Assembly (NCBI RefSeq): GCF_006345805.1 | Contig: NC_042997.1 | Coordinates: forward strand, 107,508,001-107,572,000 | Direction of reading: 5' to 3' | Source of the DNA: Octopus sinensis | Lineage: Eukaryota | DNA: 64,000 nucleotides | Shown here: one piece after another, positions 32,524 through 59,182 of the stretch | Layout: each line of letters starts with the position of its first letter | How positions within the stretch are numbered: the stretch's first letter is position 1 | Translations under genes and position numbers: made by a program | Notes under the pieces: generated by a model | What the model saw: the letters and a program-made list of their open reading frames with translations, nothing else | What the model was told of the DNA's origin: nothing | Database searches by the model: none

Positions 32524-32569
32524 AAAACTGTCCGACGAACGGGAGCGTGAAACTCTTAGTAACAGTTTT
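32524..32569 (+). ncRNA. Hammerhead-like motif, CCGACGA core, all stems intact
   Basis: AAAACTGT-CCGACGA-ACG(ggag)CGT-GAAA-CT(ctt)A-GTA-ACAGTTTT: 8-bp stem I, 3-bp stem II, 3-bp stem III. Confidence 0.75.
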
Positions 32570-32711
32570 TGTGATGTCTTTGCGGCTTTATTAATAAAGA
32601 ATATTACTCTACCTCCGGTTTTCTAGTGCTTACTCTGGTATATATATATATATATATATATATATATATATATATATATATCAAAATAAGCAAAAAGATA
32701 TCCAGAGGTAA

Positions 32712-32798
32712 TGCAGTACGATCGTTTCACGCAACTCCATTTTATTGAACAATGCAATCATTACATCAATTTAAAATGCAGAGCAATCTTCAGCTGCA
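32712..32798 (-). ncRNA. Minimal hammerhead-like motif, canonical CUGAAGA core, long stem II
   Basis: TGCAG-CTGAAGA-(58-nt fold-back)-GAAA-C-GATC-GTA-CTGCA; palindromic GATC tetraloop. Confidence 0.7.
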
Positions 32799-33597
32799 CA
32801 AAGACATAGAATTTACTTAAATTAGAACAGATGGACACATTAGTATAATTATACCTAAAATCTCCAAGAAGTTAAGGAGATAGACAAAGAACATGCTGTC
32901 TCACTCCAGTTTAGAAGTTACTGAATTTTCAAGAAGATATACATTGTTACAGACTCTGTCTGTCACAGATTTTTTTGTTTTTATGGGGTCAGTTTTAATT
33001 TATAGACTAGTTTATCAAATCCCTTGTATATCTAAGGTTGTGAGAACAGATCGTAGTATCTGTTAGGGGTAGGGCTGAGGGAGCAGACAGACATCATAGT
33101 TGGTAAAGATTTATTAGAAGCAATATCATGAGGTTTGGTAAAGGAAAACTTAAAACAAGATGTTAGCTGATAATTAAGGGGGTCACCCACTAGCAGACCA
33201 TTGATAATGAAACAAGGGAATTCTTATCATGTAGTACTATAGTTAAATATTTTAAACAATGTTGCTATATTGTATACAGTTAAAGTTTAGGGTTGTTTAA
33301 AAGATTATCAAGAAGAATGTTGTAACAAAAGGATAGAAATTTATGAATACTTTTGAGTATATACCAAACATTTTCCACAATAGATGGAGGAAAAGAAATT
33401 ATCCATTGTTTATACATACATACATACATACATACATACATATATATATATATATATATATATATATATATATATATATATATCATATATATATATATAT
33501 ATAATTTTAATCCAAACGGGAAAACAGAAAAAACAACAACACGTGGAACAATTACAGTATTATTATTAATAGGCGCTCAGGAAAGATGGAAGCAGGA

Positions 33598-33637
33598 AGG
33601 TATGACGTTTCGAGCGGAGCTCTTCGTCGGAAACATA
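33598..33637 (-). ncRNA. Minimal hammerhead-like motif, CCGACGA core, loopless stem III
   Basis: tatgttt-CCGACGA-a-GAGC(tcc)GCTC-GAAA-C-GTC-atacc; the ACGT palindrome can pair only in a dimer; stem I is decayed. Confidence 0.5.
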
Positions 33638-33990
33638 AAGAAGGAAGAGAGAGGAAAGAAAGATCCCAAGGTGGGCAACAAGAGGGAGAAAAAAAACGAC
33701 TGGTGTTTACGAAGTACACATGGTGAAAGGCGGAAGTTTACGATAACAAGAGCAAAGTAGGTTTTTAAAGCCAAAAGAGTGGAGACAGGGTTGGTAACGC
33801 AACAGATGTGTGTGTATGTGTGAGTGTGTGCGTGTGCGTGTGTGTATGTGTGTGTGAGGCGAGATAAATATATATATATATATATATATATATAATGAAA
33901 ATAGTAATGCAATACGAGAGTATTGCTTTCCAGTAAAGGATAGCCCGTGAGGGTAAAATTAGAGAGAGAGAGAGAGAGAGAGAGAGAGAG

Positions 33991-34175
33991 AGAAATATCA
34001 TTATTTCTAATTCTCTCTAAAGGAGACTACGGCAGCGGTACTGGATATTAATAGTTATCGCCAAGCTAACATGGCAGTCCAGATAAATAGGACGAATGCT
34101 GCCGTTGATTAGCTCCAAGAGACCAGTACCGCTACCGTAGTCTCCTTTAGAGAGAATTAGAAATAATGATATTTC
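33991..34175. repeat. Hairpin repeat with ~54-bp inverted arms (MITE-like or Penelope-terminal)
   Basis: AGAAATATCATTATTTCTAATTCTCTCTAAAGGAGACTACGG...CCGTAGTCTCCTTTAGAGAGAATTAGAAATAATGATATTTCT. The interior recurs inverted at about 34400-34478, and a relative lies at 14655-14738. Confidence 0.8.
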
Positions 34176-34268
34176 TATTTTTGAAAACCAGTGGATGTAT
34201 TCCACTGAATTTAGGTAAATAATCCTTCGAACTGTCGGTCAGCAGCGACGCCTGCTGGATTCGGCTAC

Positions 34269-34311
34269 TCCACATTGATAAGAGGCAAACACCTCGAAAC
34301 TTGTCTGTAGA
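34269..34311 (+). ncRNA. Minimal hammerhead-like motif, U3-A8 compensatory core
   Basis: TCCACA-TTGATAA-GAGG(caaaca)CCTC-GAAA-C-tt-GTC-TGTAGA; stem I pairs at 5/6 positions. Confidence 0.65.
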
Positions 34312-56573: not shown

Positions 56574-57499
56574 TCACTTCAATCCTCTCAGCCACCTTAC
56601 TATAAGTCCGCAGCTTCGTACCAGTGTAAGAGATCTTTATTGTTGTTGGTCGTCCGATGTTTTTATATCATTAAGTTATAGTGTTAGAACCATTGGCAGG
56701 AAAATTCAGAAAATTTATTTTCAATTCTACTGTTTATTTTTGTTACACCCCAACTAATCTAAATGGTCGAACCATGTTCACGTGGGCGTTAATGCTTTTA
56801 TGGCGAATCAACCGGTTTCTCATAGCTAGCCATGCCTTTTAGTTGCTCAAGTGGAATATCTGAGCGAGATGGCTCAAAACTCGGCAGGAGTATCGCTACA
56901 CTGCTTATTGAAGTATGGTGTTTGGGCGAACGAAGAGAATAAAGATACTGCAATGCTGATAGAGATCTTTTGGTGATAGGGCCTGAGTATGTACTGCAGT
57001 TTGAAAAGTGAAAGAGTCTCGTGCAATGCACCATGCAATTCTTCACATTTTGGAATTGATATTCGCAGGTTACCACAAGCATTGCCAATGTCACTGACTA
57101 AGACACATAACTTTTGTTCAATGATTCATTTAATCGAAGCAGGTTCTAGGCATTGGTACAGTTTACCAATTTTGGTAAAGGCAGCATTAACAATTATTTC
57201 TTTGACTCATACTGTTGACTTCTTCTAAACTACCGACATCAGACATAAGCGCATTCTACGAGAGATTTTGAAGCCAGCAGAATGCAGAATTCACTGTCAC
57301 TGTCGTTCCTTCGATATTATAAAATGATTATCAAATGAGTGGGGAAAATCGCCAGATTAATAAATGAATGGAAGTTGATGTTAAGTGTTTAGCTTTCCTC
57401 TCTTTCAGACTTGACTTCCTTTCTCTGTGAGATTTTATTAAGATAATATTATATATGTGTGTTCGTGTGTGTGTGGCTGTTTATGGCTTTTGTCAAGCT

Positions 57500-58015
57500 T
57501 CTCTTGATGATGGGAGCTGTCAGATCTCACCTCCCATATCATCAAGGTTTTTGAGAGGGTGGTGAGATCACGAATAACCCACTTTCTTAGACGGAGTAAA
57601 GTCAAGTCCAGCCAAAGTCATTAGTGGTGTTCCACAAGGCACTGTGTTGGGCCCACTTCTTTTCATCATCTACATTGCTGACATTACTGACATCACCAAG
57701 CAGAGCAATGATTCCAAGCTCCAGAAGGTCATCAATGAAGTGGGTGACTGGGCATGCCTTCAGTCAGATCTATTGGCTGTCATCCAATGAGCAGAAAAGA
57801 CCAAAATGTTGCTGAATGAGAACAAATTTGAGTTAATCTACTTCGGAAAAGAGGATACCCTGAAACTCCCATACTCCCTTTTTTCAGGTGAAACTGTCAT
57901 GGCATTCAATAAAATCAGAGACTTAGGAGTAATTGTGGATTACGTAAGACCTGGATTGCTCATATAAACATCAAATTTGACATGGCCCACAGAATGTGTT
58001 CCTGGATTCTCAGAG
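57500..58015 (+). mobile_element. CR1-type LINE RT relic
   Basis: [40 protein letters not shown]. Confidence 0.8.
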
Positions 58016-58019
58016 CGTC

Positions 58020-58815
58020 CTGCATAACCTTCTCCAGCTGTTGCAGACACGACGGTGGAGTGTAACGACTTCTAACATGTCACTCCAAGATGCACCACAG
58101 ATGTTCAATAATATTAAGACCTGGAGATTGAGGGCAGGGGGCACTCCATATGTTGTAGCCCACTACCATGCTCTTCATACCTATTCTTAACCACATGAGA
58201 AGTGTGTGTTGGAGCATTGTCATCTTGGAAGCTGCACTCACCATCAGGGAGCAATGTCTGGACCATGGGAAAGACTTGATTTCCCAAAATATTCAGATAA
58301 TCATTGTTGTTGATCCTACCAGGGCAACGATTGGATCAAGAGAATTCCAAGAAATGGCAGCCCAAACCATCACAGATCCTCCTCCGTGCTTCACTGTAGG
58401 AAGAAAGCAGTCAGGATTAAAAGCTGTTCCGGGCTGCCTCCATTCATAAACTCGCCCTGCAGCGGGGAAAAGAGAGAAACTGGACTCGTCGGAGAATAGT
58501 ACCAGCCCTTGTGATCTCTACACCAGCTCAGCCATTTCTGAATGTTTAGATGAGAAAGGGGAGGTTTCCTGATGGCGGCTCTTCCATGATATCCGGCTTT
58601 ATTGAGCTCACGGCGAACAGTTTTGGTCGAAACTTGGCTGATCAGATGTTGATTCAACTCTGTAGTCACTTTAGAGGCAGTTGTCCGGTGATTTTTCATC
58701 ACAGTGCCATTCAACGCTCGTCGGTCTCTTTCCGTAAGCTTCGAAGTCATGCCGGACTTACTCCTCCTGCTGGAAGTTTTGCCCTACTTCTTAAATTCAG
58801 TCATAGCCCTTGACA
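58020..58815 (-). mobile_element. Tc1/mariner transposase relic
   Basis: KLTERDRRAL...VSTKTVRRELNKAGYHGRAAIRKP, FSDESSFSL, TVKHGGGSVMVWAAISW, QDDNA, a degenerate PDLN region. TIRs were not found. Confidence 0.85.
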
Positions 58816-58912
58816 AACACAGAGACACACAAATATATACATATATGTCTACACCACCTGTCTTTGTCTTTTGTTTTTTTTGCGAATTCTCCCTATATAT
58901 ATATATATATAT

Positions 58913-59079
58913 ATACGACGGGCTTCTTCCAGTTTCTATCTACCAAATCCACTCACAAGGCTTTGGTCGATCCGAGGCTATAGTAGAAGACACTTGCCCA
59001 AAGTGCCAAGCAGTGGGACTGAACATGGAACCATACGGTTGGGAAGCAAGCTTCTTACTACACAGCCACTCCTGCGCCT
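58913..59079 (-). mobile_element. tRNA/CORE-type SINE, 5' half
   Basis: Homologous to 43805-43971. Confidence 0.8.
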
Positions 59080-59134
59080 ATATATATGTAACAACCAGTA
59101 CTTAACACAACAAAGCTTATACAAAGCTTTACAT

Positions 59135-59182
59135 TTTACTTTTGACAATCTTTTTCTAAAATAGTGAAACCCGTCAAGTGAA
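59135..59182 (+). ncRNA. Minimal hammerhead-like motif, U3-A8 compensatory core
   Basis: TTTACTT-TTGACAA-t-CTtTTT(cta)AAAtAG-t-GAAA-C-cc-GTC-AAGTGAA; 7-bp stem I including one G-U pair. Confidence 0.65.

Follow-up and report, generated by a model that had tools for sequence, protein, structure and literature searches.

Do the long introns of an octopus calcium-buffer gene contain self-cleaving ribozymes, and would these ribozymes cut the pre-mRNA of the gene? The question is raised by a 64,000-nucleotide stretch of Octopus sinensis contig NC_042997.1 (assembly GCF_006345805.1, positions 107,508,001 to 107,572,000, forward strand), hereafter the window, in which two introns of a calbindin-32-like gene contain five hammerhead-like motifs, denoted m1 to m5 in 5′ to 3′ order. 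An earlier reading of the DNA letters alone (the sequence-only reading) had proposed that these motifs might act on the nascent transcript as ribozymes derived from transposable elements. Our analysis indicates that the five motifs are probably not one phenomenon. We consider it likely that m1, m3, m4 and m5 are look-alikes or dead remnants, whereas m2 genuinely descends from the canonical metazoan type I hammerhead and is predicted to be barely active.

A canonical-type hammerhead candidate in the 20.3-kb intron

All five motifs were parsed as type I hammerheads. Judged by the order and content of its parts, m2 is probably a true hammerhead-derived sequence, and its components, all on the + strand, are as follows.

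34263-34315, +, m2, type I hammerhead candidate, supported by alignment to the hammerhead N79, by the covariance model R1 and by a canonical type I descriptor
34263-34265 and 34313-34315, +, distal stem GGC/GCC
34266-34268, +, UAC bulge
34269-34274 and 34306-34311, +, helix I, UCCACA/UGUAGA, five of six pairs formed, with one C·A mismatch
34275-34281, +, core UUGAUAA, the U3-A8 variant
34282-34285 and 34292-34295, +, helix II, GAGG/CCUC, 4 bp, closed by G-C
34286-34291, +, loop 2, CAAACA
34296-34298, +, G12, A13 and A14
34299, 34300 and 34301-34302, +, A15.1, C15.2 and UU
34303, 34304 and 34305, +, G16.2, U16.1 and C17, forming a GUC triplet
34305/34306, +, predicted scissile bond

Helix III comprises one A-U and one C-G pair around UU, and is thus effectively a single pair with a non-palindromic CUUG loop. 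The reference for this parse is N79, a hammerhead engineered from Schistosoma Sm1, which reads GCAG-GUAC-AUCCAG-CUGAUGA-GUCC-CAAAUA-GGAC-GAAAC-(III)-GUC/CUGGAU-UCCA-CUGC, where III stands for helix III and the slash for the cleavage site (PMC12550524). In the same notation, m2 reads CGGC-UAC-UCCACA-UUGAUAA-GAGG-CAAACA-CCUC-GAAAC-UU-GUC/UGUAGA-U-GCC. The two sequences align without gaps over 43 nt, and the order of their elements is the same throughout, with the UAC bulge and the distal stem of m2 placed as in N79. Three positions of helix II are changed on both sides with pairing kept, and five of the six positions in loop 2 are identical (CAAACA versus CAAAUA). All of the catalytic nucleotides are present in m2 once U3-A8 is allowed.

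Further searches singled out the same motif. R1, a covariance model built from N79 alone, was run over the whole window on both strands (128 kb) with filters off. The top-ranked hit was m2 (18.2 bits, E 0.011), followed by m4 (15.9 bits, E 0.051); m1, m3 and m5 were not listed, and the model returned no second m2-like copy. The canonical type I descriptor (PMC4209133) requires 6 bp in helix I, 4 bp in helix II with G10.1-C11.1 as the closing pair, and 1-2 bp in helix III, capped by a loop of 2-4 nt. It matched m2 only (at 34275), and none of 238 scrambled cores on both strands produced a match. The features of canonical metazoan type I hammerheads, including the loop nucleotides of the contact between helices I and II, are present in m2 and not in m1, m3, m4 or m5. 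A sequence-only m2 pattern matched 11 times in the JGI metagenome collection, with helix II paired in one match and the remaining helices in none; no relatives were found among these matches. Paralogues of m2, m3 and m4 were likewise not found in the window.

These features most likely reflect descent from a canonical metazoan type I hammerhead of the kind seen in Schistosoma Sm-alpha, amphibian satellites and retrozymes. The ancestor of m2 may have been carried into the 20.3-kb intron within a small element with terminal inverted repeats. It would then have decayed, its helix III being reduced to 1-2 bp and its dimer partner being absent, so as to retain little or no cleavage.

Cores, curated models and folding energies of the five motifs

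The cores of the five motifs differ. Only m4 contains CUGAUGA; m2, m3 and m5 have UUGANAA, the U3-A8 variant, and m1 has CCGACGA, in which U4 is replaced by C. The U3-A8 pair has been described as a covariation found in nature, with activity in vitro (PMC3088659), and it occurs in the hammerheads of Schistosoma Penelope-like elements (PLEs; PMC4209133). Since C3 and G8 pair in the active structure and this covariation is documented, the UUGANAA cores are not disqualifying. An initial reading of all the motifs as degenerate was dropped, U3-A8 being a tolerated covariation in the literature. With U3-A8 allowed, m2, m3, m4 and m5 match the conserved core (C3 U4 G5 A6 N7 G8 A9, G12 A13 A14, A15.1-U16.1 and H17) and m1 does not; in m3, one additional U is inserted between 11.1 and G12. 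An acceptable helix II is confined to m1 (3 bp) and m2 (4 bp, G-C closed). As for the closure of three helices on the core, m2 forms 5 of 6 bp in helix I, 4 bp in helix II and 1-2 bp in helix III, and m1 forms 8, 3 and 2-3 bp, respectively. Helix I of m3 has 3 bp and its helix II has 3 bp with a bulge; helix II of m4 starts with U·U and has 3 bp, and m5 is without a helix II.

The Rfam scan of the whole window at gathering scores gave zero matches, and at E<=10 the local searches of 67-471 nt around each motif returned no match to an Rfam hammerhead family. For the giant squid genome, 235 loci have been reported by the same Rfam family (PMC6962438). The E-value scan of the window yielded hundreds of spurious sub-threshold microRNA matches (mir-297, mir-3149, mir-5014) on microsatellites. 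The whole window is very rich in microsatellites, among them (TA)n, (CA)n, (CATA)n and (GA)n.

Folding was assessed by an energy test in which the core was forced to be unpaired and the junction pairs were forced to form, the cost being the gap above the minimum free energy (MFE). The hammerhead-compatible fold cost 0 kcal/mol for the N79 control, 8.1 for m2, 12 for m5, 17.7 for m3, 56 for m1 within the foldback that contains it, and 60-81 for m4. The MFE fold was hammerhead-compatible in none of the five motifs, and three of them (m1, m2 and m4) lie within hairpin-forming inverted repeats.

Probable look-alikes: m1, m3, m4 and m5

The four remaining motifs and the inverted repeats around two of them are as follows.

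32524-32569, +, m1, look-alike, core CCGACGA, no Rfam match, unlisted by R1; helix I AAAACUGU/ACAGUUUU (8 bp), helix II ACG-GGAG-CGU, closed by A-U, GAAAC, helix III 2-3 bp, A17 at 32561
32145-32604, no strand, foldback element of 460 bp containing m1, with 187-nt arms of 89% complementarity and (TA)n flanks
39319-39353, +, m3, look-alike or heavily decayed relic, no Rfam match, unlisted by R1; helix I CAG/CUG (3 bp contiguous; 4 of 6), core UUGAAAA, helix II GUC-UGAAU-GAC with an extra U before G12, GAAAC, palindromic ACCGGU, A17 at 39350
45540-45606, +, m4, perfect CUGAUGA at both 45547 and 45561, no Rfam match; helix I GAGCUUC/GAAGCUC (7 bp) or CUUC/GAAG (4 bp), helix III ACAG/CUGU (4 bp), A17 at 45599
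45482-45615, no strand, near-perfect palindrome containing m4, a hairpin of about 65 bp, MFE -112 kcal/mol
59135-59182, +, m5, look-alike, no Rfam match, unlisted by R1; helix I UUUACUU/AAGUGAA (7 bp including G·U), core UUGACAA, GAAAC, ACCCGU with helix III AC-CC-GU, C17 at 59175

m1 lies in the right arm of its foldback element, and the left arm contains a mirror motif on the − strand (32221-32164, core start 32217) with the same U4-to-C core. The arms differ at eight positions, none of which is compensatory. The MFE of the foldback is -265 kcal/mol. m4 occupies the 3′ arm and apex of its palindrome, so the motif reads nearly alike on both strands; the mirror copy on the − strand (core start 45536) scored 11.6 bits with R1 (E 0.9). 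Helix II of m4 is just UUC/GAA behind the U·U closing mismatch. The apex of the palindrome contains a tandem duplication of 13-14 nt (CCTGATGATTTCT) and showed only generic near-matches to plant microRNA models. The palindrome may represent a small foldback element, or small RNAs may be produced from its hairpin.

In m5, no helix II adjoins the core. A paralogue at 21545-21700 on the − strand keeps the GAAAC-GUC part and is without the 29 nt that contain the 5′ strand of helix I and the core. The "hammerhead" of m5 is a juxtaposition specific to the m5 copy. A 187-bp repeat with 90% identity between its copies is present in both introns, at 58895-59081, just upstream of m5, and at 43787-43973.

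In the energy modelling, m1 and m4 are predicted to be sequestered by their own hairpins, and none of m1, m3, m4 and m5 is predicted to be able to adopt the active fold in its context. These four motifs are probably look-alikes or dead remnants within repeat-rich, AT-rich introns, where helices come for free from inverted repeats. The description of all five as hammerhead-like is thus borne out by the architecture of m2, but m1, m3, m4 and m5 each miss a defining feature. Similarly, an origin as ribozymes derived from transposable elements suits m2, with its Schistosoma-type architecture and its 437-bp element with terminal inverted repeats, but not the other four.

The m2 host element and a related 14-kb unit

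The following features describe the surroundings of m2 and a second locus with which they share sequence.

34046-34482, no strand, m2 host element, 437 bp, non-autonomous, defined by self-BLAST, fold and sequence
34046-34120 and 34408-34482, terminal inverted repeats of the host element, about 75 nt, 96%
14413-14449 and 15341-15377, +, PLE-type motif, two 100% identical copies 928 bp apart, found with a PLE-type descriptor

An array of (GA)n at 33960-33993 precedes the host element, and one of (CA)n at 34483-34586 follows it. Its predicted fold has an energy of -229 kcal/mol (z = -17), and m2 forms the apex of the central hairpin. In the energy test, the long stem of the element extends helix I of m2 and does not sequester the motif. 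Two open reading frames (ORFs) overlapping the element were subjected to an exact look-up, which matched no record.

The terminal modules of the host element recur at 14655-14739 and 15583-15667, as detected by self-BLAST. At its 3′ end, the 14-kb unit carries TATTAATAGTTATCGCCAAGCTAA and then CCAGTACCGC...ATATTTCTATC, a sequence with copies at 14655-14739, 15583-15667, 33991-34178 and 34459-34482, and the recurrences around and within the host element show 88-96% identity in both orientations. Since the terminal sequence recurs in both, the 14-kb unit and the m2 host element are related or nested.

The PLE-type motif reads cta-UUGAAAA-G-GUUGC-AAGAC-GCAAC-GAAA-AUU-U/tag, with a U3-A8 core, an extra base after A9, a G-C-closed helix II of 5 bp and a palindromic AAUU. 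The PLE-type descriptor matched only at 14416 and 15344, with no decoy matches, and none of the five motifs passed it. The hammerhead-compatible fold of this motif lies just 0.5 kcal/mol above the MFE. It is probably located in an upstream intron of the same gene. The surrounding region, 13738-16094, is a tandem duplication with a period of about 928 bp, in which a unique segment of about 400 bp (14345-14745 = 15273-15673, 100%) is followed by 420-600 bp of (CATA)n/(ATAC)n. This arrangement may reflect either a segmental duplication of recent date or an effect of the assembly.

Chance expectation and competing explanations

A relaxed type I descriptor found 7 loci on both strands, versus 6.9 ± 2.4 in dinucleotide shuffles, and a regular expression fitted to the motifs of the sequence-only reading matched six times on the + strand and five times on the − strand. 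A looser descriptor found 11 loci versus 1.3 in dinucleotide shuffles; it was tuned after the motifs had been seen, to admit m3 and m4, and its p-values are untrustworthy. Since the shuffle null swings with the descriptor, scrambled-core decoys on the real sequence and a threshold-free helix score were added. True-core and scrambled-core candidates were alike by this score (Mann-Whitney p = 0.63), with a modest enrichment in the tail of the + strand (S of at least 9 in 7 of 27 candidates versus 4.7% of decoys). The five motifs as a set are therefore treated as not distinguishable from chance, m2 excepted; by the sequence comparisons described above, m2 alone appears to exceed chance. These results call for caution, as relaxed hammerhead patterns reach chance-level counts in repeat-rich introns, and a descriptor or model anchored in the literature sets one plausible relic apart from look-alikes.

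A different history is conceivable, in which m2 together with m3, m4 and perhaps m1 are relics of hammerhead-bearing retroelements, either PLEs or retrozymes. In PLEs, pairs of minimal hammerheads located on opposite strands and separated by 100-700 bp have been described, as have inverted pseudo-long terminal repeat (pLTR) structures (PMC4209133; PMC8557442), and m1 and m4 occur as inverted pairs. m1, m2 and m3 adjoin microsatellites, toward which PLE insertions are biased (PMC8557442). The U·U at the base of helix II in m4 is also found in the axolotl HHR_Amex2 family (PMC7229834), and m4 reaches E 0.05 with R1. The excess of U3-A8-type candidates in the + strand tail would fit such relics, as would the PLE-hallmark motif at 14413-14449 and 15341-15377, located in a unit that has termini in common with the m2 element. 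Against this history, the core defect of m1 is common to both foldback arms, m3 has an insertion at the core junction, m1 and m3 are unlisted by R1, and the enrichment obtained with the looser descriptor comes from after-the-fact tuning. The window contains 35 ORFs with a length of at least 130 aa; a Pfam scan covering ten of them found no Penelope-type GIY-YIG or reverse transcriptase ORF among those ten, the reverse transcriptase fragments being RVT_1 and zf-RVT. We regard a shared retroelement origin of these motifs as unlikely.

It is also quite improbable, in our estimation, that all five motifs including m2 are chance matches in 64 kb of AT-rich, hairpin-rich intron, although loose hammerhead patterns should occur many times in such sequence. 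The yield of the relaxed descriptor equals its expectation, the regular expression finds nearly as many matches on the opposite strand, no motif has an Rfam hammerhead match, the overall distribution of helix scores equals that of the decoys, and the E value of 0.011 for m2 is borderline and only roughly calibrated. Chance does not readily account, however, for the fit of m2 to features that lie outside any search pattern, namely the UAC bulge, loop 2, the compensatory changes in helix II, the distal stem and the GUC triplet. Nor does it explain why the canonical descriptor was matched by 0 of 238 scrambled cores, or why the sequence-only m2 pattern occurred just 11 times in the whole metagenome collection, with a paired helix II in one case.

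The explanation that we favor, a single decayed type I descendant among look-alikes, has several observations weighing against it. The E-values of R1 are calibrated only to about a factor of five either way, and the R1 alignment of the 3′ half of m2 departs from the hand parse. The Rfam hammerhead models miss m2 even in a 67-nt search at E<=10. m2 is a single sequence, for which the changes in helix II relative to N79 are the sole hint of covariation across species. With the looser descriptor, 6 of 27 pairs of core and GAAA on the + strand had three helices, versus 1.2% for scrambled cores, and this + strand excess of U3-A8-type motifs could make m3 and m4 true relics rather than products of chance. 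Moreover, some hammerheads with an imperfect structure do cleave.

The host gene and the predicted effect of m2

The part of the calbindin-32-like gene that lies in the window is composed of the following features.

27603-61906, +, calbindin-32-like gene, the part within the window, defined by tblastn, splice borders and protein match
27603-27688, 29090-29179, 29689-29775, 50095-50151, 54559-54642, 60064-60119 and 61861-61906, +, exons
29776-50094, +, intron with GT at 29776 and AG at 50093-50094, between exons ending at 29775 and starting at 50095
54643-60063, +, intron with GT at 54643 and AG at 60062-60063, between exons ending at 54642 and starting at 60064

The exons were located partly by tblastn with calbindin D28k. 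They encode 169 aa of a six-EF-hand protein, their translations corresponding to EF-hand peptides. These 169 aa are 100% identical to "calbindin-32-like isoform X3 [Octopus vulgaris]" (P0121, 345 aa), as determined with a chimeric probe consisting of the 169 aa from the window and the N- and C-terminal flanks of P0005, in which only residues 48-216 were scored. Two Octopus assemblies encode exactly this protein, with the gene extending over about 170 kb, and the gene range is 128-172 kb at the loci of Octopus sinensis, O. vulgaris and Argonauta hians (GCA_006345805.1, GCA_951406725.2 and GCA_054771915.1). Given the span of about 170 kb, the window has only part of the gene and begins inside an upstream intron; the first coding exon was sought in positions 1-27602 and was not found there.

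The sequence-only reading had named the gene calbindin-32 and had placed m1 to m4 in the first of the two introns and m5 in the second, and both points agree with our results: the protein match identifies the gene, and both introns are bordered by GT and AG between EF-hand exons. Its coordinates and + strand assignment were also confirmed for all five motifs by reading the sequence at each. Its statement that all are co-oriented with the gene is correct in that the five lie on the + strand, but this orientation is not exclusive, since m1 and m4 are mirrored on the − strand.

m2 is located 15.8 kb upstream of the 3′ splice site of its intron. RNA polymerase II elongates at a few kilobases per minute (general rates, not octopus), and transcription of the remaining 15.8 kb would therefore leave minutes for cleavage. 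At about 0.001 per minute, approximately 1% or less of the transcripts would be cut. Cleavage by m2 should be very slow, if it occurs at all, because helix III has 1-2 bp, helix I contains a C·A mismatch and there is no second copy with which to form a dimer. Axolotl hammerheads with a one-pair helix III are cleaved to 6% in 1 h as monomers (PMC7229834), and cleavage of single PLE minimal hammerheads was undetectable (PMC4209133). m2 should thus not measurably reduce calbindin-32-like mRNA, and cleavage of the pre-mRNA by the motifs is probably negligible. The premise that cleavage within a long intron can lower mRNA output has support in the literature for an efficient ribozyme, as N79 in a 17.5-kb Drosophila intron resulted in a knock-down (PMC12550524). 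This result should not transfer to m2, which is not predicted to be an efficient ribozyme. The best-supported part of the earlier proposal is its own reservation that minimal hammerheads are weak as monomers and that the effect may be nil.

An active or domesticated intronic ribozyme, with at least one motif (m2) cutting the calbindin-32-like pre-mRNA co-transcriptionally and tuning its output, is in our view highly improbable. m2 does retain every catalytic nucleotide with U3-A8 allowed, the 15.8 kb to the 3′ splice site leave time for cleavage, and the host stem extends helix I instead of sequestering it. An efficient hammerhead in a long intron knocks down expression (PMC12550524), and conserved intronic hammerheads exist in amniotes (PMC6155905). 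These points are opposed by the helix III of 1-2 bp with its non-palindromic loop and no partner copy, the C·A mismatch, the energy gap of 8.1 kcal/mol and the behavior of comparable monomers (PMC7229834; PMC4209133), which would imply cutting of about 1% or less. If m2 were active, it would offer a natural example, from a cephalopod, of a ribozyme controlling a neuronal calcium-buffer gene, and it would also be a canonical type I hammerhead that works with the rare U3-A8 core. It is scarcely credible that m2 is a functional sense-strand intronic hammerhead with a U3-A8 core, retained in the intron at 29776-50094 and stabilized by the host stem, which trims the pre-mRNA or yields a stable intronic RNA in neurons as the cephalopod counterpart of the amniote ones.

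Other repeats in the window

The Pfam-scanned ORFs contained only fragments of reverse transcriptase like that of long interspersed nuclear elements (LINEs; RVT_1, zf-RVT) and of a hAT transposase dimerisation domain, none of them near the motifs.

5540-8361 (−), 19394-19867 (+) and 2010-2519 (+), LINE-like reverse transcriptase and hAT fragments

A tRNA-like head (GGAGGCGCAATGGCCCAGTGGTTAGGGCAGCGGATTCGCGG) is located at 39537-39600 on the + strand, directly after (CA)n, and has a 91% copy at 12904-12957. This element looks like an octopus tRNA-derived short interspersed nuclear element (SINE). ARAGORN called no tRNA in the window, the tRNA-like head included.

Comparison with known systems

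One of the known systems closest to m2 is the Schistosoma mansoni Sm1/Sm-alpha type I hammerhead, from which N79 was engineered; m2 shares with it the distal stem, the (G)UAC loop, a 6-bp helix I, a 7-nt core, a 4-bp G-C-closed helix II, a 6-nt loop CAAA(U/C)A, GAAAC and GUC, as well as a short non-autonomous repeat as its carrier (PMC12550524). Unlike N79, m2 has U3-A8 in place of C3-G8 and a C·A mismatch in helix I, the 3′ side of its internal loop has 1 nt instead of 4 nt, and its helix III is just A-U and C-G around UU. In addition, its host element has terminal inverted repeats and is not SINE-like, and the Rfam hammerhead models miss it.

The hammerheads of amphibian satellites and axolotl retrozymes (HHR_Amex1 and HHR_Amex2) resemble m2 in being type I with a helix III of 1-2 pairs and a tiny loop (PMC7229834). 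Their monomers are nearly inactive, with 6-22% cleavage in 1 h, and dimers are needed (PMC7229834). These hammerheads occur in tandem units of 330-350 bp and have a palindromic loop 3 by which they can dimerise, whereas m2 occurs only once and its loop 3 (CUUG/UU) is not palindromic. The U·U pair at the base of helix II in m4 recalls HHR_Amex2; m4, however, lies inside a palindrome. In a non-LTR (non-long terminal repeat) retrozyme, tandem units of about 150-450 bp, arranged head to tail, each contain a type I hammerhead; m2 differs in being single and in an inverted-repeat element. In Xenopus, 42-44% of retrozymes are intronic, although they are depleted there (bioRxiv 10.64898/2026.07.22.740005).

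PLEs are known in cephalopods (PMC8557442). Their minimal hammerheads (PMC4209133) share with the motifs the U3-A8 pair, a short helix I, an occurrence as scattered singles or inverted pairs and a proximity to microsatellites. PLE minimal hammerheads are further marked by an additional nucleotide separating positions 9 and 10.1, by a long helix II with G10.1-C11.1 as its closing pair and by palindromy of 15.2-16.2 or loop 3, and they are located in the pLTRs of elements that encode reverse transcriptase plus GIY-YIG; none of the five motifs has the full set of hallmarks. The motif at 14413-14449 and 15341-15377, which is not one of the five, has all the hallmarks of PLE minimal hammerheads.

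The amniote intronic hammerheads of the HH9/HH10 kind (RECK, CTCL and DTNB; PMC6155905) are, like m2, Schistosoma-like type I hammerheads on the sense strand in the intron of a protein gene. They show deep orthologous conservation and are efficient ribozymes, whereas the structure of m2 is weakened. Intronic and transposon-borne type I hammerheads are already well documented in metazoans, and m2 would be at most a new, weakened type I hammerhead with an uncommon U3-A8 core.

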